A stretch of 63,587 nt of DNA, filler included, from Cercozoa sp. M6MM (GCA_040357565.1; 5 parts of 5 records of this genome joined end to end with filler, not necessarily neighbours in it), one strand, 5' to 3'. Positions 18,944 to 38,092 are shown, counted from the whole stretch's first letter. A program made the numbers and translations. Notes: generated by a model from the letters alone, not told the origin.

Positions 18944-18989
18944 GGGGGGGGGTAAAGGTGGCAAGGGGGTAAAACGTCTTTGTGTGCAG

Positions 18990-19990
18990 GACCCGAGCTC
19001 GTCGTCGCTCACGAAAATCGACTTGTCCGGCAACCGACTCGAGGAGGACTGTCTGTAGCTTTACCCCCCTTTATCCCCCCTAGCCCCCTACCCCCTTTAC
19101 TTCCCTACCCCCCCTTCCCCGTTAGGCTGGAGTTGTGCGAGGCGCTCAAGTCGAACACGCGTCTGCGTTCAGTGGTGGTAGGACACGTTCGTTATGTTAA
19201 AGTTGAGGTGGCTACACAGTGCGGTGGTACAAGTGTACCCTACGATGGCACTGTGTTTGTGTGTGTGTCCAGATGGACGAGAACAGGACGTCGTTAAGGG
19301 TGCTCAAGGAGCTGAAACGCATTCTGCGCGAGAATCATACCTTGGTCGACCCGGCCATTATTCCGATGAGCGACGTAGCTTGCCTTCCTTCCCTCCTGTG
19401 GCCCCTTAACCCCCTCCCCTTCCCTCCCTCCAGGTGGACCAGACAATGACGCGTCTGTCGCGTGCCGAGAAGGCCGAGTTGAAGGAGACCATCATCAGCA
19501 TCGAGACCGCCGTGGCGCGCAATATGGACGAGGTACGCACGGCCTTTATCCCTTACCCCCTTTACCCCCCTCGCACAGTTCGGAGGCGAGCGATGCGTGG
19601 CGCAGCTGTTGCGTGACACGGTACACAAGTGTGAACCCTCCTCCGTCCCTGTGTCACACCGCTCCCTTAACAAAACCTCTCTATGTCTGGACTGACACAC
19701 AGGGCACGGACTGGCGCTCGCAGTTTCTCGAGCAGCTGTACGGACGTCGCTCGCGCCGCACCGGCTCGGACGCTGATGAAGCGGCCGTCCGCGCGGACGA
19801 GGACGAGGACGAGGACGGCCTACTGCCGCTCCGCGAGGACCGCTTCGACGACGCCGGCGTCGCGGGCGGCGACGACTTTGCCGCGCCCTTAAACAGTCGG
19901 TCGCGTGGCGCCAGTATGGCCATCCGCGCGCAGACCGCCGGTAGCACGGCCTACGCCGCCTCGGCGCGCCTGCGTCGCTACCAGAGCTGA
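18990..19990 (+). CDS. Partial (3') RNI-like leucine-rich repeat protein
   Basis: Spliced SLTKIDLSGNRLEED..LELCEALKSNTRLRSV..MDENRTS. Confidence 0.65.
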
Positions 19991-20891
19991 GCGCGCCGTA
20001 CCGTAATCGCTTGTGCGCACATTAATGCGGCGTATGCACGGCTGTCGTGTACGGTAGTACGGTAGCATGAGTAAAATATATTCAAGAATTGTGTTGTGTT
20101 CAGTCTCAGTACGCTTGCTTCCACACTACTCAGTCAGTCAGTCACAAACGAAAGGCAATCCCGGAAGGAGTAATGTCGTGAGATTGCCAATGCAATTTAA
20201 GTGAAGACAACGACAATTAGGTTCGTTCAAATAAACCGAAAGATAATTTATCAAGTTTCCCCAAGGTAGGGCCGTCGATACAGTTGAGAGTGTGACGAGG
20301 TTTGTTCGAAAGTCAATAAACAAACACCCTCTTGCCTGCTCAAGATAGAGCAAATCAGTTGCTTTGTCAACAAGGACCGGGAGGACGTGTAGGCCATGCG
20401 AAGTCGGAGCGATGCAAATAGCCAAGAAGGACGCCGAAGCCTATCGCGCGCACCCCGCGAGATAGTTCGTTCAGTCTTCTAACGTAAAAACGTTGACTTG
20501 GCGGTACGAAGCCGTCAAACGTGCGTTGGGGTACGGGGTCGTTCACCACACGTCCACGCACACTTCATTGGCGTCAACGTTCGCCCTGCAGCAGTCTCGT
20601 CTCAGTCCTGGTTGGCGTCCAGCGACCCACCGCATCGCATCAAAGTCTCGGGCGTCACACGACGCAGCGAGATAACGACGAGCACCGTGGCTGACTGAAT
20701 CAACGGCAAAATCTATCATGGACGGGATACTTCGCATGTTGTGTGCGCGTACGCGTGCGTAAGGAGACTAGACTAGACCAAGTAATCGAATTTACAGACG
20801 AGACTAGCTCGGCTACATGTACAAAGCAGCTAGCAAATGTCGGTCATCGCGACATCGCTGGGCTGCTGGAGATGGGGTTGCGTTGGTTGCG

Positions 20892-23800
20892 TCACTGCAT
20901 GCCGTCCATTTCGAGCTCGCGCACGCCTTGCTCTAGTGTTAGAAAAAGCAAAACCTTAACAGAGAAGGAACACTGACAAAGAGGTCAACGTACCGCCGTG
21001 CAGCTCAAAGACGGACGGCTGCGGCTCGGCACTGACGTGCGCATACAGCAGGTGCTGCAGCTGCTCCTCCTCGTCCTCCTCGTCGGCAGTGGCGTCCTCA
21101 AATTGCTCCTATCAGAGAGAGAGAACATAGAAGTTGCGATATAAATCAAACTGGTACACTGGAGGGGAGGTAGACAGGGTCACAGACCTCGTACCTTTTG
21201 CGAGTTGAGCACGAGACCAATAAAGAGGTTCGAGAAGAAGAGCGTCACGATGATCGTGTACGACATGAAGTACACCGATGCCGTCCAGCTGGTCGACATG
21301 ATGGCCGCGTACATCACGTCGTGCCAGCCAGCCTGGGAGGGGCACACAAGAGGACGTACCGAAGCTTACAGTGACAAGAGGAGGTATCGATACCACAAGT
21401 AGGTGGAACAAGGCAATGAACGCGTAGGGCAACGACTCAAAACGCGCCTCGGGTAGACGATCCTCTTGCAGACGCGAGTACTCATCACTGATCACCACAA
21501 AAAACAGGTCTCTCAGGTAGCATAAGCGAGGAGTGAGAAGAAGAGCCTACCCGAACAGGTAGATGCCCATGACGCCGTAGACGTAGAAGACACCCAGCAG
21601 CACCAGGAGCATCGACACGAACTGCGGCACAATCTTGGCCAGCGAGAAAACCAGGCGACGCAACGACACCTGTTCGAGAAGGGAGGGATAAAGGAGCGAT
21701 ATGGTAGAGGTAAGGGGACAGGGGGGGGGGGGGGGAAAAGGGCAGGCTACAATAAGCGTGAAGAGTCGCAGGATGCACAGCGTCAAGGCAAAGCGCAGAG
21801 AGTCGTCCTCCTCCTTGTAGGACAGCACGCGACCCGTTGAAAGTCGAGTCACCACTGTCAGCAGCAGCGACAGCAGCACGATGAACGTGTCCACGCGGTT
21901 GGCCATTTGACTGTCCACGCGGAATACCCCATTAACCGAATACAACGAAAAACCACAACTGCACAGGTACCGATCGAGACACGGCGTGTGCATGGTATCG
22001 TGGTGGATAAAACCACGCCAACCCCAGCCAAACACCTTGACTCCAATCTCCACCACCTGTTCGTATACTCAAGTGTAAAGGATGTCGGGGGGGGGGGGCG
22101 GAGGGGCGAGTCTGGGGTACCTGAGCCAGCAGCAGGAAGAACAAGATCTGATCGAGATGAGTAACGTCGTCGGCACCGCCATAGTACGCCATGCACACGA
22201 TCTACTCGAGTGGAGGGAGGCGTCAAAGGGAGAGTGCAAGGAACACCACAGAATAAGTCACCTCGCCCAACACGACAAGCTTCAGCAGCAACACGCCGGC
22301 GGCACCGCCCCAACTGTGTCATACACACAGAAAGGTAAAGCGCTAAAGGAAGTCAACAAGAAGGAAGATACCCAGTCAACAGATTGTCGCGCACCCATTT
22401 GCGCAAAGCGTGCGTGGACAACTGCACACACATATGAAAAGTGAGTGAGGGGGAGAGAGGCAGAGGGTAAGGGAGTAAACAAGGGCAAGCACCTCGCGCT
22501 GTCGCTGTCGCTGTCGCAGCTCGCGCATGCGATCGTCCATGTTGCGCATGTCTGCAATGAGAGACTCGTGAACAGAAAACACGCCCAGCCAAGGCCTGGT
22601 AAATAAGTGGTTGAAAGGTACGGTGCACGAACTCGGTCTTGGTGAGACCCGAGTCGCTGGCGCCGTCTTGACGCTCGTACAGCGAGTCGACGTCCTCGTC
22701 CGCATCAACCTCCATCACGCGACGCAAGAAATCCTAATATAATAGGGAGGGCGTAAAGCCGGTAATAGGGAGGTACAAAGGCACAGCCTACGCGGAACAT
22801 GTCCTCACTGAGCAGGTGCTCAATTTCCTCTTCGGCATTGGCATCCTCGGCATCCGCGCGGACGTGGCCTACCACGGGTTCCTGCTTGGCCAGCACAGCA
22901 TACGCTGCGATCAGTCGCGAGTCGTCAGTCACCTGGAGGGGTACACGGGGTAAAGAGGTACAAGGGGTAAAGAGGTGCACGGGGCTAAACAGCAGTCAGG
23001 CTACCTGCAGCCGCTGGTGCAGCTGCTCGTAGGACTCCTCGAAGCCGTCTTGGAAACGGTCGACGATCATACCTGGGAGCAGAGGAGAGCGTGAGGGTAC
23101 ACGATGACGATCCAAGACAGAGGGCAGACAGGGCGAAAGTCGAGTGTACCCAGGATGATGAACATGCCAAAGACGGTGAAGGCGATGAAGTACACCGTGT
23201 ACCACGGCGACACTTCGTAGGCCGGGTACACCAGTTCCTCATAGTTGTCACCCGTCGAGATGAACACGAAACTCTGGGAACGCAAGGGGTAAAGGAGAGG
23301 ATGGAAGGGACAAGAGGGAGGGGATAAAACAGCCCAGTACCGTCGTCATAGAACGCACAAAGTCGGAGAAGACTGAGCCGGGACTCCAGTCGTCCAGCAC
23401 ACGTCGGAACAGCACAATGCCCATGGCAGCTGCCACGGCCACTACCACCAGGTACAGCAGCAGAACCGTGCGCATGCCGGCCGACGTCAGCGTGCGCCAG
23501 AACGAGGCCACCACGGCGGCGACACTCTCGTTCGTCACCAGCAACAGCAGCGGTCGTAGTGCCAGTAGCCACAGCTCCGTCTGCAGGGAGGGGGGGTCAA
23601 GGGGTCAAGAAAAACGAGGCACTGCGAAGGGCAGACAGTACCCTTGGACCGACGCACATCATGATGACATCGACGATGAAGAACACGATGAGCGCACCGT
23701 GGAACAAGGTCGCCTGCACCGTGCGATCACTGCCGAGCAGGTTGGTGCCGGTGCGCCATAGGATCAGCGCACGTGTCACCCAGTCCAACAGCTCCAATGC

Positions 23801-26800
23801 CTGGGAGGGGACACGAGAGGTAGAGTTAAAAGAAGTAAAGGCAGAGAGACAGGAGCTACCACACACACGCCGGCTATGACCACAATAGCGACGTGCGGAT
23901 CCTCCTCGTCGAAAAAGTCGGGTTCCGCAAAGCCGAGAATGATGTGCACCAGTGCGATAACATTGATGCCGAGCGTCCACCACACTGTATTGCGCATTCG
24001 GTGCAACCACAACAGCCGGCTCGACTGCATGGTCTGCATGGGGGAGGGGGGAGTAAATTGTACATAACCGAAAAAGCTAGGGAATACCTCCAGTCGGCAG
24101 GTAGTCACTATGTTCGACGACTCGTTAAAGTGTGTCGCTGCGCGCTGCAGCCTATCAGGGAGAGAGGTAAGGAACAGTACACAAAAGGGCAAGGAGTAAA
24201 GACGCAGTACTTGACTTGCCGGTCGCCATTGCCGCGCAGACAGGTGTCATAGGCCAGGTGCACACTGCTGGTGACCTCGTGATTGACGAGTTCACTCACG
24301 ACGGCCACGTCGGTACGCGCTGCTTTCTGCGCCAGTCGCGTCTGGTTGTGCCAGCTGCGTCGCTCGTCCAGTTCGTCGTCCAACCAGGCCACACGCAGAC
24401 CTGCACAACAGGAGGGTCTATCAGGAGGGGAGAGGGTAAAGGGGAGACAGAGGCCAGACTACAGTAGTAGATGCCGATGCCGCAGCCAATAGCAACGGCG
24501 AAACGTGTGATGAAGGACAGCATGATGTCGTCGTACAACCATTGGTACAGACCGTCTTGCTTGGGCACAGCAAACACCGACAACCACGGGTTAGAGGACA
24601 CCACGCCATCGGCATCGTCGACGAGGGCGACATACGTGTGCGCACGGTCCACGGCACGCGGCACCTCCTCCACCTCGATCGACCCAGCACCTGCAGGGGG
24701 AAGGGGAGAGAAGGGAAGGTCCGAATGAAAGGGAGAGAGAGAGAGAGAGTGAGACAGGAAAAAGGATACCGGTAAAGTCGCCGATGGAATCATCGCCATT
24801 GGCATCGACACTGGGCAGGAGGTGACCCGACTGACGCAGGAAGGCCGTCGTCTGGCGTACCACCGTGTCCGAGATGTCGTCACCGTATACCACACTACCG
24901 AGGGGGGAGGGGTTGCGGGTAAATACCAAGGGGTAAAATGGGTAGAGAAGTTTATACGCTTGGATTTCTTCGGCCGTAAGTTCGAACGGCTCGCCCTAAC
25001 AGGGGGAGAGAGGTACAAAGGGTGCGTTCAGAAGGGCAACACGCACCTTTTCGTTGAAGAGATCGCCAGCCAGGTAGCGACCCGAACGCTGAAGCAAAAA
25101 CAGACGCTTCATAGGCGACACGCGAAGTCTAAGACGGGTAAAGTAAGGGTGCAATATGCAATAAGGGTGTTTAAAAAAAAGGGGGGGGGGGGTAAGTACT
25201 GCGTGCGACGCAGCACATCGTCGAACACGCTGAGACGGATGTCGATAGCAAACACTCCCGACACGTACTTGCTCTAGGGGAGCAAGGGTGAGGGACAAAA
25301 GAGAGTATAGAAGGAGATTAGCTACTGTACCACAGTGGTGTCATAGTAGTCGCCATTAGCACCGACGCCCGAGTTACTCGGGTCGACCAGCGGCGTACTA
25401 AAGGGAGTGAGAGTAAGGAAGGTAAAACGAACGAGGAAGGTAAAGCAGTACGCCAGAGTGATGCCGAGACCACCGCTCGCGTATGTGTACAATTCACTGC
25501 ACGAGGTAAAGTGAGGTAAAGGAGGTAAAACGAAAAAGTGTATGGAGTATAAGCTTACGTCCACTGCGACAGGTAACCCGGTCGACGGCGACCGATCCAG
25601 TCGAGCCAGCGCGAATCCTTGGGTCCCGTCATGTCCACCTGTCCATGCCAAGTGGTACGTTTGATGGGGGTAGGACTGGATCGCAAAAGGGGCAAAGGAG
25701 TAATACCTCAGACAGACCGGTGGCCTCAAAGAACTCCGTCACAACCTCCTGGGCACGAGAGACCGCCATCGTGTACCTGTCACAGGAGGATGAAGGGGTG
25801 GGTGACGCGAAAGGAGGTGAAGAGGTAAAGCAGCGGGTATGAAGTAGAGACACCAGTTTCGATCGCGTGGGTCAAAGCACAAGTTGCCATCCTCATAGGC
25901 AAACGTGTCTCGGAAGAAGGACAACTTTCGGGCCGCTGTGTTTCAACGAGGTTAATGGGATTAACATGAGTGCTGTGGGTGGGGGGGGGGGGGGGCAAAT
26001 CGCACGCGTGAAGTAGTAGGCCGTGTCGTTGGTGTCGCGGTGCATCACCGTGATGTCCCTGGGCAGAGGGAGTCAGGAAGCGGATGAAGGTAATAAAGAA
26101 AGTGGAGTCTCTACCACCCAGCATTCGTGGTGCCGCTGGCGGCTTTAGTGGCACCGATCATGCGACCATCGCCGCGACCCAGGTACACAGCGTCCAGCAG
26201 CATACCACCTGGACCATCAAGTTAGACAGAGACAGGTGCACAGGTACATCTGGACAGAGAGGTACCGCTGTCGTTGCGGTAAGAGTTCAGCGTGCCCACG
26301 AAGAAGCGGTCAAAGTAGTTGAACTCGGGACCCTGTGGGTATTGCGAAATATAGGCTCAAAGGGGAACGCATCGAGTTACCTCAACGCCACTTGGTGGCA
26401 AGGTCGGCTCGCGCACCTTATCGTCCAGCGCCAGCATGTCGCCGAGGTCGTGTCTGGGGGCGGGGCGGGGAGGGGGTAAGGGTAAGAAAGGGTTGACGGG
26501 AGAGCAGTGGACCCTACCTAGACAACGTGAGCTCCATGACCTGTCGAGCACTCTGCACGTAGCTGTTTGACACGTCCATGTGTCGCCTCGCCGCCTGCAG
26601 CATCGTGCTGTCCACAAAGTCGAAGGTCGCCAGCGACTCCGACGCCAAATGCAAGGCCCACACGACCTGGGTCGGGGGGGGGTACAGAAAGCAGAGGAGG
26701 ATAACACACACACAAGAAAGGAGAAAACTGTACCAACACGATCAAAAAGGCGCCCAGCAACAAACGCGGACAGTTCACCGGTAGTGACAGAAGTAATTTG

Positions 26801-29735
26801 TCCGTGTTCTCCAACTCGAATCTCGCCTGGGATTAAGGAATAAAAGAGGCAACAAATAGGTACGAAAATGAGTCAAGCTACATGCAGACGCTTGGCAAAG
26901 AGACGTGCGTGGTGTTGCTCAGCACGCGACTGATTGGCGCGCGCCTCGTCCAGCAGTGCCTGTGTCAAAGAGAGAGCGGGTGGGGGGGGGGGGGGGATAA
27001 ATGAAATCAAGGAGTAAAGTCGCGGCACCTGCATCTCCTGCACCGACGGGTGGTCCTCCACGAGTTTCTCCACCGCCTTTACTTCCTGGAGAGGGAGGGG
27101 TGAAGTTAAATGGGTAGTGAAGAACTCAACAATAACTGAGATACATCGGCAGGCATCTCGCCCAGGACGGTGACACGCTGACGCAGACTGTCGACGTCCT
27201 CAAACGCCGTCTCGTCGATACCGGCCATATGGGGTGCCTGCAGTCAAATAGAGGTAGAGGGGTAAAAGAGACCAGGAATAAACGGTAAGCTCTCAACGCA
27301 CGCCAGTGTTCTTCGAGATCACACTCTGCATCCACGCTTCGCGAGCCTACTCAACAACGTGCGAGGTAAAGTGGTGCTATGAGAGGGGTCAAAGGGATAA
27401 GACTGCACCAGAGGCATCTGTTCACTGAGCAAGTGAACGCGCCGATCGCGCAGTTCCTGCTCTGCCGTGCGCACCATGCTCTCGCACACCTGCAGAGGGA
27501 GAAGGGATCTCCAACATAAAAGAAGGGACAAAAGCGCACACCTGCAACTCGCAACGCGCCTTCTCCTCCTGTGCCACCGCCGCTGCAAGGGCCTCCTGTG
27601 CAAAAAAAAAGCGAACGGGGTTACAACGAGAGTGTGGGTAAAAGAGAGACTACCCGACGCAGTTGCGCACGCACGCGCATGGCGTGACACTGCGACGGCG
27701 ACACTGCCGCCACCACGCGGTACAGCCAGCGCTCGCGCGTCGCCAGTGGGACCTACGGGAGGAACGAACAGGACAAGATGGTAAAGCAGAGACGTTTAAG
27801 GGTCAAACATACCTCGTAGATGGCAAATGCGGCCACAGCAAACACGAGGGCAACGACGAGGTAGATGGCATTGCTTTCGGTCGTCATCTGACGCAGTTCC
27901 TCCTCACTGTACTCCGTGTCTAGTACCGTCACGACCTTGTACTCCAAACCACCAGACGCGTGCACCGACAGTGCCGACACCCAGTAGCCTGGAAGGTAAT
28001 AGGGAGTGAAGGAAGCTGAATGGAAAGCAAGGGTATAATGAGGTACCATCATCAGTGCGATGAGGCTTCACAATGACGGCATGTCCGTCTTCACCGGGTT
28101 CGTACGACTGCGTCAGTCGGTCGCCCAGGTAGCCCAGTGCATATTGCTCCTGCGCACTCTCGGCGGTTGCGCCTTCCTCAAAGGTGCGAGCCACAGTCGA
28201 CATCTCCTGCTCGAGGAAAAAGGCACAGTGTTGAAGGAGGGCAAAACGGGTCAAAGGTAAAGAGCAAACTACGTCGATGGTGATGAAGGCACAGCCCTTG
28301 CGCGGAATACGCGCGCGCTCGAGTGCCGGTTGCATGTACTCCGGGATCAGGTCAGCAGCCACAATGATCTCGACTCCGGGTCGTGTGCCATTCGGCAGAG
28401 GTGCCAGTGTCACGCGTCGGTAGTCGTGCACCGTCAGACCGCGCTGCTGCAGGTAGTCATAACGCTGCGTCCACTCTGGTCGCTTCGTGTTCAACTACGC
28501 CCACAAAAGATTAAGCTGAGCCTTATAAGGTGAGGAGGCAGAGAAGGAGGGACAACACTCTACCTGAAACCACGGTCGCGAGGTTTGATCGAAGGCACCG
28601 CTGCTGAGGGTCGTGCCCGTGGTCGACAGCGTGCCCTCATCGTCGAGGATATCGTAGGCAATGATCTCCTTGGTGTCTGATGTCTGGTACCGCAGTTGCC
28701 GCTTGCCATCACGTGCGTTTTTCTCGTAGAACACGCCGATCATCTGGTGCGCGGATGCCATGTAGAAGCCCTGTGGGAGAGTACAAGAGGTACAACACGA
28801 CTGAGGGTAAGCGAGATAAATAGATTACCGTGGTTCCGTAGCCGCGTGTAAGTGAGTAGTCGTCTTTGCCTTTGTCCAGGTCGATCGTCGAATTCACCGT
28901 GAATTGCTGCAGCATCACCTCGAACGTCTGCCAGAACGCCCACGCCGGTGGATGTGTCTTATTGCTGCGTGCCACAGAGGAATACGTGACATGGGGCACA
29001 GCTTGGGGGGGGGGGTACAACTGATAGGTGAAGAGAAGTTACCTCGGCGGGTACAAGGCCGTAGTTACATCGCTCGAGTTACTGCTGACAAGGTTCTGGA
29101 AGAAGGAGCCGTCCAGCAGGGTGGAGTGACCGACCGACACGACATCGACGGCTTGTCCAATGTCGCGACTAGCCAGTTCACTCACGCGGTCCTCCGCCTC
29201 GCGCAGCAGTGCCTTGGTCGACGTCGCCAGCGACTCCTGCGTTGGCTGCCGCCAGGCCTCCCAGCCGCCCTACACTCGAGAGGAGTAACAGTTTCAGTCA
29301 ATTAGTCAAACCATGCCTAGACTTACCACAACAAAGGCCAGGATGAAACCGGCGAAGAACACAATGGCCCAAACGGCACGTGGCATGCCACAGTAGCGCG
29401 TTTTCGCCTCCGGTTTCTCTGACTCTTCCTCTTCCTGGGAAAACACGCATACCACAGGTGATCCACCAGGTGACCCACACAGGTGACACCGGCACCTCCT
29501 CCGTGATGACAGGTGGCTTCGCGTCTAACACCGACTGCTCGCGCATGCGCAGTAGCGTGGCCGAGCGGCCCATGACAGCGCCATCACTAAACAAAAGCGT
29601 TCATCAGTTCGGCTTTTCAAATCAGACAAAACAGCGGCGTATTAGAAGTGATTGGGGAACATTAAGAAAAAAGCGAAGTGCAGCAAAACCAAAAAAGGCC
29701 TAAAGGCAGCACCTAGCACTATCATTGTCAGCCAT
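20892..29735 (-). CDS. Fusion protein: TM-dCache-TM-linker-TM-dCache-TM followed by a two-pore channel (2x6TM); about 50 exons
   Basis: dCache1: FDQTSRPWFQ|LNTKRPEWTQRY...IIVAADL. dCache2: AVYLGRGDG, FDPRDRNWY, ELYTYASGGLGIT, GVFAIDIRL, WLSVFAVPKQD. TPC: ILGFAEP, ALRPLLL, FISTGDNYEELVYPAY, VVEIGVKVFGWG, LRLF, FHLLV|AGWHDVMY, FFSNLFIGLVL. Inter-module junctions splice in frame with GT-AG. Confidence 0.82.
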
Positions 29736-31619
29736 GGCCGAAGCGGATCGCCGTAAGCCGCGTGATGGTAGGGCCGCACACTCGGCGTGAGTCTCGTGAT
29801 GTGCTGTATCCCACCGACTGACGAGTTGTCGAACCGCTGAGGAAGAAATTCACGTGCAAGATTGCTTTGATCACGACAACCACTGGGATCAGCCAAACGA
29901 TCAGGCTGCAGGAGCAACTGCAGTCTTTCACGGTCCGGACAGGTAGGTAGTGCAAATGATGGTGTGTTACCGTAATCTGCGATCGAGACACCGGGGATTG
30001 GCCAGCGCCACCATTGTTTTTGGTCCTGCGAGTTTCATAAAACTTAGACATCTGACCTCGTTTGCTTCACGAACAGGGGGATGTCTTAAAGAGCTGCAGG
30101 TTACTGACAGTACTATAACGCGTCTACAAGTACGTCCTGGACAGTGTGTTGTTTTTCTTGTGCCCGCCCGCTCCGACGCTGTGGTGAGTTGCTGGACCGC
30201 AACTGCCGACACTTTTTCAGTTAACGTAGCGCATTCAAAACGGCGACCACTTGGGAGGCACCAACATAGAAACAGTAGCACAGGCTGTACCTAAAGGCTC
30301 GGATCCGAATTGGCCAGGCAGCGACGGCCTGGATGCTGTCGGAGAAAACAAAAACGCGCAAATACGTGTTGCTCGAGACTCATTGTCACAGCTGACGCGA
30401 TACGCTGTCGAAGTTCCTTGTTTGGGCATGTGCAGTTCTTTAATCAAGCAAGTGCTTGTCAGCATCGTCGTCCTCTTGCTGTATCACATTTCCTCCTTCC
30501 GTCAGTATTAAAATAATGGGCGGTCTGTTGTTTGAATTAGTGGAGCGACGCTGTCACTGCTCGCGAGGTCACGGCCATTCGAGACTTTGGATGTTGGACA
30601 ATCCTACGTGCCTATGCGGCTGGAGCAGGAGCAAGGGAACCTCGTTGTGCGCAACCTTCCGCCGCCGTCGACTTCTTTAAACGTAAAAATGAATGATTAC
30701 TAAACTTACATTCCCTTTGCTCTTTATCACTTTCAGTCCAAAAAAGAGTCATGATTCAGCAATGCAAGGCGCACATCGTCGACTTCAAGTTGTGGCCGCG
30801 TTTGAATCCATCGCCATACGGTGGGCTTTGAAGGGGCAAGCTCAAGTTTTCGACACATTTACTGACTGGGGGAGTTTGTGAAACAGGAGTCATAGCGGAG
30901 GGCGCGCATGTCGATTGGACGCTTTCGAATGCTTCCTACTACCCTTTGGTAACGAGACTTAATTTTACTTCTGTACATTATGCATTACTCCTGTACATTT
31001 AATTACACGCATGACACGAGGGCTGTTTAAATCAGAGTTTCCCGATCGACTTTGACAACAGAGCGCAGTTGCATGCGCTAGCTGCTCGCGAGATCTTGGG
31101 TGTGGAAATGATTTTTAATGCCATGCACGGGGACTTATTTAATTGTTCGTATCTCGCAGGACTTGTACCTCCGACAAGCGCACGTGCTCAAGGAGTACAG
31201 CTTGTCACACTGGCCAGCGTTACTGTTTTGTGGCTTTTCACATTGATGGTGCCGGTGCTTGTTTGTAGTGGTGGCACCCCCGTCTGCCGTCGTTGAGCGC
31301 GACGCAGAAAGTCGAGTCGCTCTGGCACCAGGGACGGCTCGTTCCTGTCAGTGTGCTCGTGGAATGTAAATTTTACATCCAGTTTACTGGTCAATTATCC
31401 CCGTCAGTCTGATTATTGGGTGCTCTTGTTTGATCCTAGTGGACGCGAAAGCTGTCACAATGTTCCGCTACCCCAATCCTGATTTTTCGTTTTTCCGTGG
31501 CTGTCAGTTATCGACGCGCGGACGTCCGATTGCGTTACTTTGCCTTTTCGCGTATTTGCTAATTCGTTGATTCACCTTTCGTCACGTCCTTTGTCGTGTA
31601 GCGACGCAGTGTCGTGGTC

Positions 31620-32331
31620 AGCATACATAGCTCGCAGTACAGTGTGGAAACTTAAGCTTGGTCATGCACTCCGAGTGCAGGTAAACAATGAATTTACAAC
31701 GATGCCATTTAACAAAAACCTTCTGAGTGACTTCAGTTTGACTCTGAGTAATAATTTACAGGCACAAGTCATGTGCGTATTCGAAAAAACTGAGTGGACA
31801 AATTTTATCACCGCTAGTCGTAACGACGAGCGCGGAGAAGGTTCAGTTTTTCCTATTCGCCTGCCGTGGATTGCATTGCGTTTTTTGTTTGACCCAGGTG
31901 GCTACACCGTGACGGTGCAACACGGCGGAGAAACTTCGCACCGTGATTGCAAGCCTGCCTTGGAGGTGTCAGTCGACAGCATCGTAAATGTTCTTGGTAG
32001 TCTTTACTGAAAACTTCGTTTTGTGGACAAATATAGACATACCAGGACTGTAACTTTAGAGGGCGAAACCGTCACTTTGGGACTAAACTGCGGAAAGAAC
32101 TGTGTCGTGGCATTGGCTCCCAAACTGTAAATTCAGGACTGAAGTGCTGTACGAGACTCGTCCCTACTATTTCCAAATACTGCAATGTAGGTACGGCGAA
32201 GCTGTTCCGCGACAGGTGGCGCACTGGCTCAAGTCTGTGTTACAGCTGAGTAAGTTAGACGGTGCCATTTTGGGAGTAGTCACCTCGCACCTGGTACATT
32301 TAGTCTTTTTAATGATGAGTTTTTTCTCCTA

Positions 32332-32407
<76 letters not shown>

Positions 32408-34200
32408 ACACACACACAGACACACACACACACACACACACACACACATTACATAGTCCATCACGTACGTACAAAATCAGCTGTGCGAACATGTGAACTC
32501 TCTTTCCTCCCCATCATTTAAAAAAATGAAACTGTTTGTTCAGTTGGGCAAAGATTGTTGCCGAGTACTCGCAAAAACGCGGTTTTTGCCAGTGCACGCG
32601 CCAGCTGCGAAGGTAGACTTACCTTTACCGTGACCCAACTTGACGTTCGGCAGTCGAAGAAACATTACCCCGCTATTTGCGAAGGGCGCCGTCTACAGCT
32701 ACGGTGATGCGTTCGTCGGTACGCACTTGTTGCCGACGCTGGCACGTGCTGTTCACACCGTTGTCTTTGGCGATTGGTATGTCTCTTTTTTTTTATTATT
32801 CCTTCGGCATAAACAAGGTTTGTGCAAACAGGGACGAACTGTTTGAGATCCCGCGTCAAAATCAACGCGCTTTCGCCGCACACACAAAGAATATTGTGCG
32901 CGCACTTATCACTTCGACTTCACAGGTTCTTCTGATATTTTAGGTTTTTACTTCCCCGAGTGGTATACTAAACGTCTGTTCTAGGATGAGATCGAGAAGT
33001 GTTCAAGTGCTCTGATCGAACCTCAATCTGCAGGTATTATGTGACCGGTGGATGGTTTTATCTGATGAGATTCGCGTGTTTTCGCTTTAGTACGCAAACT
33101 ACTAGACTCGAAAGCACGTCGCGACTTTGTCTTGTAGTTTAGATGCTACAGGGGATTAAACCGGATGAACATCGCTGAGTTTTTCGTGTAGAAAGTGGCT
33201 TCACCAGTTCGGTTGTGCGATGACTCTGCAAGGAAAAACGGTACAATAAGTTTACATGTACACTTGGGCGAAAGTTAAATGTGGTTTCTCGGTGAGCAGT
33301 CATGGCGTCCAGAGGAAATGGTAATGTTCCACAACCACGCGGACGACGCTTACTCCAGAGCATGGCGAAAAAGAGGCATTGACGCAACTCCTCGCGGCAG
33401 CAGCGATGGCGCTGTGGTAAAGTGGCCTCTAGATTGGTGTGGAATTTTGAAGAATAGTGGGAAACTTAGCTCGAAGCGACGCAACACGCTGCAAGACACA
33501 ACAAGCACCATGCGCTGTTGCCAGTCAGTTGGCTTGAAGTTCACCTGCGACTCAACACACTCGACAACGTGGACAAAAGCACTTTGGCCGCGTATTGCCA
33601 GCTCACTGCCTATGTCCGAAGGTCTGTGCATATATGTTTATATTCTGGCATGTTTTTGACAGGGCTTACGCAAAAATGAGGGAGTGGTACACTCAGCCTG
33701 AGGTATTTACACACTAATAACAATTCCTAGATTTTCTTCACCTTTTCGAAAAATCGCAGAACGCCTGGAAGGACAATCCAAGCCACGAAGCGCGACGTGC
33801 TTTACAACTTCTGCTGGAGCAGCCAAACTTTGTAAGCAATAACTTTCGGCCACCGACTCGACGTATGTTCAGTTTTGCCCGTAGGAACCCTTCTTGTGGC
33901 ATGCACGTATCGTGAAAAGTCCGGGTACAGTAATTTTTGCCGGAGTGAATGAAGTAGGAAACACGAAGAGTCCCCTTCATTTCTGCAGAAGTTGGTGGCG
34001 TCACGCTGCGTGAGGAACGCGTGCGCGACTGGCATCGTGCGAGACGCGCCGCTAGGGCAGTCAACGGCAGTGCTGAGATGCCATTCCCTGCATCTCTTGT
34101 CGTCACTGGAGATTTTAAGTGGTTCTCTCCCATTTTCCTCTCTCTAAGTTTTGTAGTGACGCAAACACACATTTTGTAGTGACCACGAACCGGCGTGCGC
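31620..34200 (+). CDS. Possible multi-exon gene or pseudogene of unknown function
   Basis: Short open segments bounded by gtaaac/gttcag/gtaagc donors and ag acceptors; no recognisable motif. Confidence 0.25.
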
Positions 34201-34327
34201 GTGCAGTTGCGTCGAGTTTCTTAAACTGGCTCAGCGACTTGAACTCTCGTCCGGTATGGCGAACGCGTCTCAAACCCCCTAGCTTTTTGCCTCAGTCTAT
34301 TCCGTTAAACTTAGTTAAGTGTGTGTT

Positions 34328-34380
<53 letters not shown>

Positions 34381-35096
34381 AAGCAAGTGGCATTGTCAAC
34401 TGTAAAACCGAGTACTATACAAATACTTTTACGTCCACGCGCTGTGCGAATCCTGAGAGATTAGAAGTCCGAATTTTACACGTGCCAATTTCGAAGTCGT
34501 GTTCAGTGAGATATAGAAGTGTCGAAGATTTCGACGCGCGTTCGCTGAAGAATCCTCGAGCAAGCTTTTGCAGCTGAACTCAACGATACAACGCAAGGAA
34601 TATCTCGTGATTCTTCGATCCACACTGTAAATACGGGTCAGTTCAGTTCAGTTTGTTCGACGAACATGTTTTTGATACCGTGCAGTACCCGCAAACCCGA
34701 TCTCTTACATATGCATGCAGTTCGCCCTCGAGTTGCGTTGTCTGTTGCTGCAGTTGGTCTGCTCATACCCAGTGGTGCTCATTGTTGCTGTTTTTGACAC
34801 TGAAAACCTGTAGTACAAGTAATACGGTACCTATTTTTGCCATTAGTTTCAGTAGATCGACTTTACTCACAGTGGCGCCGCTCATGTGGCGGTGTCAATA
34901 CCGTAGAGCGTATTGGATAAATTTACACTCAGGAAGTCGTGCATCCTTTACAGCACTCCTTCGCGCGAGAACACTAACAGACAAGCGCGACTCGTTCACG
35001 TAAGCGTGCGTACTCGGAGTCGGAGAGCAAACAGCTGTAATGCGCCTGGTCCCTGTCCATACAGTTGGCACCATGAAGGCCTGCAGTAAATTACAC

Positions 35097-37594
35097 GGGC
35101 CCTCCCCTATCGTCGGGCCCATAAAAAAACTGTCGCGAAACAAGCTAGTTTTTACCTTTAATGAAGCCTGGGCGTGTGTAGTGATTGTTTAGGCGTTTTT
35201 GAATTGTACTAGATGCTTATTTGTCGAGTTATTGTTGCTCGGGTTTTTGGTTACCCGAGGCAGGCCCGCGCAATCTGTTTTTCTTTATTGGTTGATGTTT
35301 TTCGACATTTGTCGCAGGGTTTTCGAACTTTTAATTGACACATCATTGGCTAAGTTGATGCTCTTTCTCTAGGACGTTGTATTGCTGCTGAGCGAGACGC
35401 AAGGCAGCTGCGTTCTTGGCAACACGCTGCGGTCGTTGCACCTGGTCTCCTGCATCGCCGTCATCGTCCAAGTACATGGCTTGGACCTGTGGGACGAGAA
35501 TTTCGACCAAGTACGGTTCGCCTCGGACGCGTCTTCTTTTTGTCGGCCGCGGATTCTGTGCCAAAAGGTAGAATATTCGACAACAGTACCACGCTGCCCC
35601 AAGCATGTAAAGTTCGAATTCATGTTAAACATAAAGCGAAGATACCTCGTCTTCGCACTCGTTTGACTCGCTGTCATTCTCGTCGAGCAGCGCAATGAGT
35701 TGGTCAACAAAGCGCTGATCGTGAGTGGCGAGCACCGTCACGAGAAGTCCCTCCTGAGTTCGTGTGTTCTTCTCCATTTGTATGCCCTAAATTTAATCAT
35801 TGTGTTCATTGGATATGGGTGATTATATTTTATATGTGCTGTGACACCATAGGGGTTGGTGTATCAGAGTACCTGGGAGAAGAGACAGTGCAGCGCGCGC
35901 TTCCACAGAACAGCTTTCGCTCAGTATCGTCATCGTACTTTTTCAGCTGGCGCGTGTCACGGAAGCGCGTGAGCATGGTTACGGTCTCGTCATCGTGCTC
36001 TCCGATGCGAAAACCGAGGGTAGCGTTGCGGTACCACTGCACGAACGCCATAGCCATGGCGATGCTTGTAGGGTCGGTAACGCCTTTGAGCAGCACGAAC
36101 CTGCTCAGCAGCTGACGCACGTGGCTGTGGCCGCCTTCGGTGCTGTTGGTGTTGATGGTCTTGTTGGCGTCCTGCGTCGACCGCTTGACCCACTCTTGCC
36201 TGTGGTTGACGGACTCCAGACAACAGGCGAGGTCTTCGTGCGTCACGTTAGAATAGTCGATGCCTTTGATATGTGCAATCGCTCTATGGCCACAGGGTAC
36301 GCCTTCCACGAGTCCCTGTGTACCCAATCATACCTCTGTAGTGATTTATGTGTTTGTGTTCTGACAAAGTTTGTGTTCTGACAAAGTGCATGTACGTTTG
36401 AGTTTGGAACAGCGTGGAGCCCGGCTTGATGAAAACCTTGTCCATGAGAACGGGGTAGAAACTCTCGTTGTCTCGCTTCATGGTCACCTGGTACCGGTAC
36501 TCGAGTACGCGCCGAGTCTCGCGCTTATTTTCCTGCGGGATACATGCGCGAGATGATATGTTCTTATTGTGTGTTGCGTGTTGTGCGAAGTGTACAGGTG
36601 TGCTTGTACCTTGTCCCAGAAACGCGCGCACAGAGTCATCGAGAACACCCACACTTCATGTGAGCGCTGTGGACGACTGTGTTGGTTCTTTGTTGGCTTG
36701 TTCTTGCCGAGGCAGAACTACAAAAACTTGGTACTACATCTACATTTTATAAATTATGTGTACCTCGTCAATCTCTCGTCTTGGTTGCTGGCGCACAGAC
36801 GTTCGCCGAGTCGGTACTGCTCCTGACGCAGGCGTTCACTGCGGCCGAGGATTCCGACGCTGCGGCGACGAAGTGACCGCGTCCACCGGGGGCTTTTTTT
36901 CGGACGGTACGAGCCATGCTTGAGATGGTACCTTTGTCCCACGACATCACGTGCAGAGCTCTCAGGTTCTGACTGAGAGAGCCGCTGCCGTGCGACAAGA
37001 CTGTGTGAAAGCCGTCGGCTTGGCTTGTCGACAGGAAGATGCAGACCTTGCAGCACTTGCTGTTGCGTGCTGTGTTGCCGTCACGCTTCGTTGCTGTACA
37101 GCACCAGGCCAGTTTGTGCTCGTCGGGAGCTGCGCACCTTGAGCACAAGCTTTCGCTCACAGTGCTTGCAGCTCGGAACGTCTTCTCCGCGAACGCTTTT
37201 GTGCAAGTGCTCCTGCAACACAGTATCAAATATATTCACTGCTTGATGTTTTTTTCTATCGTGTTTATGTACCCGTAGTGCCTCAAGCAGGGTTTCCTCT
37301 TTAAGCTTCGCAAGTTCGTCTGTTGTTTGTGCAAAATGCAAGATTTAGAGCGATTCAGCAGGCGTTTTCTTCTTCTTGTCGGCACTCATGTTTTTTCTCG
37401 CCCAACGAAATTTTTGATTTTCTGTCGACGCGCCCGATCGCTAATGATGCTCTGCACACTGCTATTGTATTTATAGAGCACACACTGGGGGTCAGTGAAA
37501 AGTGCTATCTTTGTAAACTGATCAACATGAAATCTACTTGTTGGCTCAGTTTTATCGGCTCACTATTTTTACCCGACGATACGGTAGGATTCCC
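35097..37594 (-). mobile_element. Merlin (IS1595-like) DNA transposon, 2498 bp, imperfect TIRs, 9-bp TSD AAATTACAC
   Basis: TSD at 35088-35096 and 37595-37603. Left end gggccctcccctatcgtcggg versus reverse-complement right end gggaatcctaccgtatcgtcggg. Internal transposase motifs. Confidence 0.85.
35343..37341 (-). pseudogene. Intron-containing, frameshifted Merlin/ISXO2 DDE transposase
   Basis: CKHC..WCC zinc ribbon; EIDE|FCLGKNK...EVWVFS; IKPGST..TDSWKAY; SVNHRQEWV...INTNSTEG; frame breaks near 37125, 36775 and 36270. Confidence 0.82.
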
Positions 37595-38092
37595 AAATTA
37601 CACTATCTGGGGTATCTGTCCGAACGCCCCTATCCGAGTTAATCAATACTTCGGGCACCCCAATTGTTACTGCGACTCAATGGCCAATCAGTATGGGAAA
37701 GGAGAGACTAAGTAAATCATTCAATTAGATAAGTCGTCACTCAGTAGGGGAAATACCCCTACTGGGTCTCGAAGTGATCCCACTGGATCTCGACCGAAGA
37801 AAGACGTCCTTGGTCGTAACAATGCGTTTATGAAAGAAAAAACTCCGCCCTGTGAACACACGACGAAGTGAGTGGAATGGAAACCAGCCAATGAGCTAAC
37901 TGACCAGGCTGAAGCCGTGACGGAGCTTTCTGCTTCTCTGCAAGGACTCTGTCCAGGCAAGATCTACAGCAACAGCAATCCACTAAGTCAGTAGTTAGGT
38001 CTCAGAGCAAGGTACCAAGCCAGAACACTCTTAAACGTCTTTCCTGTCTCAAACTTGTTTGAGACATAGATTATGACCTCCACGCGGACGGG

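Follow-up and report, generated by a model that had tools for sequence, protein, structure and literature searches.

P0001, a protein of 1847 amino acids (aa; NCBI MES1912185.1, annotated as hypothetical protein MHM6MM_004502 of Cercozoa sp. M6MM), is encoded on the minus strand of the window, by which we mean the whole stretch of DNA analysed here (63,587 nucleotides (nt), filler included, from Cercozoa sp. M6MM, GCA_040357565.1, in which five parts of five records of this genome, not necessarily neighbours in it, are joined end to end with filler; positions are counted from its first letter). Our analysis points to P0001 as a candidate amino-acid-regulated channel, in which two dCache_1 sensors, with pockets that would bind an amino acid or an analogue, and a two-repeat cation channel would be carried on one chain, a proposal that we judge from the sequence to be evenly poised between right and wrong. 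The protein threads letter for letter onto the window from 29735 to 20892, in 52 exons separated by 51 GT-AG introns of 48-126 nt, and a leave-one-out codon test gave every exon positive log-odds in its annotated frame and negative ones in both alternatives.

Two dCache_1 ectodomains

Transmembrane (TM) helices and layout were assigned by hydropathy (Kyte-Doolittle), which gave 16 TM helices in the order TM1, dCache_1 module 1, TM2, a cytoplasmic linker, TM3, dCache_1 module 2, TM4, a linker of ~100 residues and two six-TM Ion_trans repeats. The segments are as follows:

20892..29735, minus: whole gene, from the exact spliced mapping of P0001 and codon log-odds.
29264..29377 including intron 3, minus: TM1 (aa 58-76), signal anchor ahead of module 1; Kyte-Doolittle peak 2.42.
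27867..29263 including introns, minus: ectodomain of module 1 (aa 77-432), a diverged dCache_1; hhalign, hmmsearch and ESM Atlas.
27750..27866, minus: TM2 (aa 433-451); hydropathy peak 2.43, aligning with TM2 of bacterial receptors.
26764..27749, minus: predicted cytoplasmic linker (aa 452-640), charged, in eight small exons; no Pfam family, helical or coiled-coil in look by eye only.
26640..26763, minus: TM3 (aa 641-659), anchor ahead of module 2; hydropathy peak 2.45.
24527..26639 including introns, minus: module 2 ectodomain (aa 660-1071), a better-conserved dCache_1; hhalign, hmmsearch, weak Pfam and ESM Atlas.
24399..24526, minus: TM4 (aa 1072-1093); hydropathy.
23986..24398, minus: TM4-channel linker (aa 1094-1193), carried by exons 33-35 with introns 33-34; codon scores and intron features.
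23062..23985, minus: channel repeat I, S1-S6 (aa 1194-1413); Pfam Ion_trans and hydropathy.
21207..22303, minus: channel repeat II (aa 1557-1792); matched by Pfam Ion_trans over aa 1584-1800 and aligned to CaV3.2.

Both modules have their own flanking TM pair (TM1/TM2 and TM3/TM4), which is the topology of dCache_1, and the TM pattern is compatible with an extracytoplasmic or luminal position for both, on the side of the membrane that holds the pore's outer mouth. The four TM helices that precede S1 are compatible with ectodomains that are outside or luminal and with an S1 whose N-terminus is cytoplasmic, which the channel fold needs. A first, sequence-only reading of this DNA had placed the modules within 24540-28770; the modules are there, but its boundary has to be moved, as the ectodomains start upstream of 28770 (module 1 at 29263..27867, module 2 at 26639..24527).

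Searches with fragments of the gene gave little. Pfam, run on 20 stop-free minus-strand reading frames, returned weak Ion_trans matches only and no Cache domain, and a PDB phmmer search with the two motif-bearing exons of module 1 returned no match. Because single exons were blank in both Pfam and PDB, we built our own bacterial reference set, using a degenerate DNA pattern for Y-DPR-x-RPWY that yielded 120 bacterial and archaeal loci. Sixty aligned sensor regions, of which 60/60 are Pfam dCache_1, made up profile A1, and a second profile, used for the hmmsearch scores, was a hidden Markov model (HMM) of 94 such dCache_1 domains. PctA residue numbers were transferred through an orthologue that shares them (L071; 441 bits to 5LTX).

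Aligned by hhalign to the whole of P0001, profile A1 found module 2 (97.65 %, E 2.5e-12, aa 665-957, 183 columns), covering its stalk and distal part and the first portion of the proximal one; aligned to module 1 alone it matched from the motif onward through the proximal module and TM2 (93.0 %, E 3.4e-7, aa 251-443). The dCache_1 fold consists of a long stalk helix with two PAS-like modules, one distal from the membrane and one proximal to it. With the TM helices removed, the 94-domain HMM scored 57.2 bits on module 2 and 22.6 bits on module 1 in hmmsearch, and 36.7 and 21.1 bits, respectively, when the N-terminal motif was masked as well, compared to 1.1 bits (module 2) and 3.4 bits (module 1) for the best of 300 shuffles per module and <=1.4 bits for the linker and channel parts of P0001 in the same test. 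On profile A1 module 2 scored 48.6 bits and module 1 20.4 bits, where CACHD1 scored 83.7, alpha2delta-1 57-61, TlpQ 39.9 and McpU 23.4 bits. In the ESM Atlas, the neighbours that a language model assigns to either module were all clusters of the Cache clan (0.96), which we take as a lead only. By profile homology both modules are demonstrably dCache_1 homologues, so that the two dCache modules first read from the raw sequence are borne out by profile-profile and HMM scores far above those of shuffles; module 2 and alpha2delta-1 lie at about the same distance from the bacterial amino-acid subfamily, and module 1 is far more diverged.

Amino-acid motif

In the amino-acid motif of dCache_1 domains (AA_motif), Y121, R126 and W128 touch the ligand's carboxylate and Y144 and D173 its amino group (PMC8915833). 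In PctA the R126A mutation lowered affinity 61-fold, and D173A and D173N abolished binding (PMC8915833). The motif is borne by 10,808/86,346 prokaryotic dCache_1 domains, or ~1 in 8; its halves lie 13-17 residues apart in prokaryotes, with Y[x27-34]D, although the paper tracks alignment columns (PMC8915833). Profile alignments put the following residues of P0001 (minus strand) in the columns of PctA:

PctA Y121: F255 in module 1, F816 in module 2.
PctA D122: D256 in module 1, D817 in module 2.
PctA R124: T258 in module 1, R819 in module 2.
PctA R126: R260 in module 1, R821 in module 2.
PctA W128: W262 in module 1, W823 in module 2.
PctA Y129: F263 in module 1, Y824 in module 2.
PctA Y144: Y276 in module 1, Y876 in module 2.
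PctA D173: D312 in module 1, D921 in module 2.

Their positions in the window are:

28567..28593, minus: N-terminal motif half of module 1, F255-DQTS-R260-P-W262-F263; hhalign.
28459..28461, minus: Y276 of module 1 (in WTQRY), 14 residues past W262; alignment to PctA Y144.
28351..28353, minus: D312 of module 1 (in IVAAD); alignment to PctA D173.
25854..25876 and 25773..25776, minus: N-terminal motif half of module 2, F816-DPRD-R821-N-W823-Y824, the W823 codon being split by intron 23 (25853..25777); hhalign.
25564..25772, minus: insertion of 47 residues between the motif halves of module 2 (aa 825-871); gap in hhalign, no Pfam family.
25487..25489, minus: Y876 of module 2 (first Tyr of ELYTY); alignment to PctA Y144.
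25241..25243, minus: D921 of module 2 (in VFAID); alignment to PctA D173.

Four of the five residues that define dCache_1AA (R126, W128, Y144 and D173) are thus present in both modules. The strings on which the sequence-only reading had rested (F-DQTS-R-P-W, a Tyr 14 residues later and an Asp in module 1; F-DPRD-R-N-W, the Tyr of ELYTY and an Asp in module 2) occur in P0001 on the minus strand, and in the alignment to PctA that it had called for, the five residues of each module land in the Y121/R126/W128/Y144/D173 columns. Its statement that only the first Tyr is replaced, by Phe, holds for the five defining residues of both modules but not beyond them, as the structural Tyr129 of module 1 is also Phe. 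D122 and R124 form a salt bridge (PMC6974571); module 2 keeps this pair, Tyr129 and the Y-L-G..D-G strand, whereas module 1 lacks R124. The motif halves are separated by 13 residues between W262 and Y276 in module 1 and by 51 between Y824 and Y876 in module 2. A single-pass hmmalign had put Y144 on F839, an effect of the insertion; both hhalign and a two-domain hmmsearch alignment give Y876. Two residues past the Y144 equivalent, both modules also have a Tyr (aa 278 in Y-D-Y, ~28455-28453; aa 878 in Y-T-Y, ~25483-25481), at which the PctA orthologue has Asp146.

Compared directly, modules 1 and 2 show no significant likeness beyond the N-terminal motif (blastp E 1.0, hhalign E 0.46). In an alignment by way of the bacterial profile their identity is 17 % across 123 columns, with the same residue at 5/5 motif positions, and five identical motif positions at such low overall identity suggest that these residues are constrained. 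Phe at position 121 was looked for in nature among F-DPR-x-RPWY domains from metagenomes (at least 120 loci, 94 usable): among the matches listed, Y144 and D173 were both kept in 72 % of the 94 Phe121 domains, compared to 82 % of 110 Tyr121 domains. Phe121 is therefore a frequent natural variant, usually accompanied by the rest of the clamp. In this sample the N-terminal motif half is joined by the C-terminal one in ~75-80 % of domains, so the motif residues are better read as the signature of a subfamily than as five independent signals. Relatives that bind amines do not conserve R126 (PMC10589655), and its retention in P0001, where amine-only receptors lose it, favours a ligand with both a carboxylate and an amino group. 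An amino acid or a similar compound is a reasonable prediction for the ligand of both modules. In alpha2delta, side-chain preference is set by other residues of the pocket (PMC9901441), and in P0001 the loop concerned is remodelled.

Channel region

Pfam Ion_trans matches P0001 twice (E 1.4e-33). Among channels of solved structure, T-type CaV3 comes nearest (E 8.4e-26), followed by CaV1, NaV and NaChBac, and a word-index protein search with the channel region returned animal CaV3/NaV at ~24 % identity; plant TPC1 aligns over both repeats (aa 1326-1798). The pore loop of repeat I (23226-23264, minus) reads T-G-D-N-Y, with Asp, and with a Tyr that stands for the customary Trp. That of repeat II (21312-21417, minus) is V-A-G-W; the selectivity position, Glu or Asp in CaV3.2, is occupied by Ala. 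Both by alignment to CaV3.2 and by direct reading, S4 holds one arginine in repeat I and two in repeat II. Weak voltage sensing is likely from the arginine-poor S4, which suggests that a ligand, rather than voltage, may be the main control.

The linker between the repeats (22304-23061, minus; aa 1414-1556) is very acidic and contains, by eye, a degenerate EF-hand-like loop, D-G-A-S-D-S-G-L-T-K-T-E-F, which recalls the EF-hands that plant TPC1 has in the corresponding linker. Pfam reports no EF-hand here.

Alternative explanations

Several observations, given in this paragraph and the next, count against reading P0001 as an amino-acid-regulated channel. Pfam dCache_1 (PF02743) reached 11.8 bits (E 0.17) on the whole protein, over aa 912-962 only and short of the gathering threshold of 45; this, with the blank Pfam results on single exons and the blank PDB phmmer of the motif exons, would fit motif matches that are chance strings in a non-Cache region, an explanation that is hardly credible when profile scores stand far above those of shuffles and of the rest of the protein even with the motif masked, the TM-ectodomain-TM arrangement occurs twice and the Atlas neighbours all belong to the Cache clan. 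The pockets themselves are not canonical: Tyr121 is Phe in both modules, Arg124 and Tyr129 are changed in module 1 (T258, F263), the residues between Tyr and Asp number 35 in module 1 and 44 in module 2 against the published 27-34, and two long insertions lie near the predicted pocket of module 2. An insertion of ~41 residues in module 2 falls at the loop equivalent to PctA 109-118, a side-chain contact, and this loop is unalignable in module 1. Strictly applied, dCache_1AA membership fails on Tyr121 and on spacing, the latter being secondary as the definition rests on alignment columns, while Arg, Trp, Tyr and Asp, the key residues, are in place. Motif-bearing dCache_1 domains can also bind related ligands that are not amino acids. 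It is thus conceivable, if rather unlikely in our estimate, that the modules are genuine dCache_1 domains which bind some other ligand (an amine, an organic acid, a purine or other), or which bind nothing and serve structure or trafficking, with the motif kept for fold or by descent. The missing Tyr121, the loss of R124 and Y129 from module 1, the non-canonical spacing and the insertions in or beside the side-chain contact loop would all suit such domains, as would the co-occurrence of the motif halves as one signature in ~75-80 % of the bacterial sample and the score of module 1 on profile A1, which is only about that of the polyamine receptor McpU (20.4 vs 23.4 bits); for domains that bind nothing, the second, motif-less dCache of alpha2delta is a precedent. 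Set against this, R126 and D173, whose mutation cripples binding in PctA, are kept in both modules, with D173 not the inactive Asn; amine receptors do not conserve R126; and the modules have diverged to 17 % identity yet share exactly these residues, all of which argues for an amino-acid-like ligand.

The presence of sensor and channel in one chain hinges on intron 33 (59 nt), intron 34 (54 nt) and a 64-nt exon (24151..24088), and its dependence on two short predicted introns and on the lowest-scoring exon of the gene belongs with the points against. The rival model is an annotation artefact, in which a membrane protein with two dCache modules stops soon after TM4, at ~24111, intron 33 being left unspliced, and a separate channel gene begins from an ATG at ~24040; under it the motif finding stands and coupling in cis falls away, although the two partners could still cooperate as alpha2delta and CaV do. 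Such a split is made easier to imagine by the very compact genome, in which neighbouring genes lie a median of 162 bp apart (PMC13746701), by the ATG just upstream of S1 and by the linking exon 24151..24088, whose coding score (0.27 bits/codon) is below that of every other exon of the gene. Yet only ~70 nt would separate the two genes; introns 33 and 34 match the other 49 in length, in their GT..AG ends and in pyrimidine content (70-75 %); and the linking exons score 0.53 and 0.27 bits/codon in the annotated frame and are negative out of frame, including the frame that the split model needs. Moreover, the count of TM helices sets the N-terminus of S1 in the cytoplasm, as the channel fold requires, and the deposited M6MM annotation was trained and updated using transcriptome reads (PMC11069148). 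The split is therefore quite unlikely, and the sensor is very probably fused to the channel. The last points against the fused amino-acid-regulated channel concern its distribution: word-index searches with aa 60-1110, 1200-1847 and 740-1000 returned no orthologue (P0001 itself only, plus CaV3/NaV), and a metagenome scan returned no relatives of exon 7. The lack of orthologue matches may partly reflect an isolated lineage.

Proposed mechanism and comparison with known systems

If the reading of P0001 as an amino-acid-regulated channel is correct, the membrane-distal pocket of each module would bind an amino acid, or a close analogue with amino and carboxyl groups. The Arg and Trp columns (R126, W128) would clamp the carboxylate and the Tyr and Asp columns (Y144, D173) the amino group, as in PctA-type receptors and alpha2delta-1, and the lost hydroxyl of Tyr121 would cost one hydrogen bond to the carboxylate. 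Binding would shift the TM helix that follows the module, as in bacterial receptors, and the shift would pass to the channel via TM4 and the linker; alternatively, the ectodomains may touch the extracellular face of the channel, like alpha2delta on CaV. Having two repeats, P0001 would dimerise to form a four-repeat pore.

P0001 shares with the bacterial dCache_1AA receptors (PctA/PctB/PctC of Pseudomonas aeruginosa, 5LTX/5T65; Mlp24/37; Tlp3) a sensor domain outside the cytoplasm that is bracketed by two TM helices, homology that is significant by profile, R126, W128, Y144 and D173 in both modules, and, in module 2, also D122, P123, R124, Y129 and the Y-L-G..D-G strand; the motif halves of module 1 are ~13 residues apart, as in prokaryotes. 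It differs from them in having Phe for Tyr121, a longer distance from Tyr to Asp and large insertions in module 2, in the tandem arrangement of its modules in one chain encoded by a eukaryotic gene with 51 introns, and in its output, which is an ion channel rather than a kinase-control, cyclase or phosphatase domain.

According to two Cache surveys (PMC4822843, PMC8915833), prokaryotic Cache sensors control kinases, cyclases, phosphatases and chemotaxis arrays, and in animals Cache sensors sit on the auxiliary alpha2delta subunit of calcium channels, where their role in signalling is still unclear. Like the metazoan alpha2delta/CACHD1 proteins with their gabapentin and leucine site, P0001 is eukaryotic, has two dCache_1 domains with the amino-acid motif and is tied to a CaV-type channel; its module 2 resembles alpha2delta-1 in score on the bacterial profile (48.6 vs 57-61 bits) and is interrupted between the motif halves at the same site, where those proteins carry a VWA domain (PMC8915833). 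The modules of P0001 are, in contrast, in tandem with their own TM pairs and not nested, and its sensor lies in the polypeptide of the pore and not in a separate auxiliary subunit. A survey found a VWA insertion in every eukaryotic dCache_1 protein that it detected (PMC8915833), whereas Pfam found no VWA family in P0001 at E up to 1 and the insert at that site is 47 aa. The likeness to the alpha2delta gabapentin site proposed from the sequence alone thus extends to the shared motif columns but not to the VWA insertion or the nested arrangement.

On the channel side, P0001 has two Ion_trans repeats in common with plant TPC1 (5E1J) and CaV3.x (9AYG); the alignment to TPC1 spans both, and the best match of each repeat taken singly is CaV3. 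The two-repeat form is that of the TPC family, and in the comparison with solved channels the per-repeat scores are higher to CaV3. The 1190-residue N-terminal sensor region is not known in either family, the pore of P0001 has D (repeat I) and A (repeat II) rather than the EEDD of CaV3, its S4 is arginine-poor, and it is only ~24 % identical to any channel found.

The outputs listed in a survey of Cache domains are chemoreceptors, kinases, cyclases, phosphatases and transcription factors, with 'ion channels' referring to alpha2delta subunits only (PMC4822843). Neither of the two Cache surveys (PMC4822843, PMC8915833) includes a Cache domain attached directly to the pore of a channel, and Cache is not mentioned in a broad survey of voltage-gated-like channels. 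P0001 could be imagined as a new class of ligand-gated cation channel, with bacterial-type dCache_1 amino-acid sensors and a CaV/TPC-like pore in cis, a cis version of alpha2delta-CaV, although we hold this wider proposal only tentatively and think it doubtful. Were it true, an amoeba could convert amino acids outside the cell or in a lumen straight into a flow of cations, and the rule of VWA insertion in eukaryotic dCache_1 would have an exception. Should both the fusion and the ligand hold, binding at the universal amino-acid pocket would be readable as current in a simple system, P0001 would be a natural test of how the movement of a dCache domain passes to a voltage-gated-like channel, and it would hint at how a bacterivorous amoeba senses amino acids.

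Gene model and host

Strain M6MM has since been named Lemnamoeba sinaloensis, a marine rhizarian amoeba whose compact genome of 27 Mb has a mean of 13 introns per gene of ~82 bp each (PMC13746701). The piece of the window that holds the gene (18944..38092) is without long bacterial-style open reading frames, and its minus strand consists of short coding segments with GT..AG gaps of 50-80 nt between them. The product was identified by a HMMER search of exon 7 (74 aa; 28273-28494, minus) against 1.84 billion representative proteins, in which P0001 was the sole true match, at 99 % over the exon; apart from it only four spurious repeat proteins were returned. Our own dynamic-programming gene model kept one intron and mis-set several exons, and was replaced by the annotated P0001. 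It also chose starts other than the annotated N-terminus. The first annotated exon (29587-29735 region) has only 23 nt, and the intron after it, at 126 nt, is longer than any other in the gene; because of this the exact N-terminus is the least certain part of the model.

All introns of the gene are pyrimidine-rich on the coding strand (0.51-0.86), and several minus-strand introns contain runs of 10-13 C (~26990-27000, 25980-26000, 25180-25200), which appear as 'PPPP' in raw translation. G+C is ~0.56 over the gene and falls to 0.47-0.50 upstream (30000-38092). Dinucleotide microsatellites, (CA)58 at 32333-32448 and (GT)30 at 34319-34378, match the high simple-repeat content reported for the genome.

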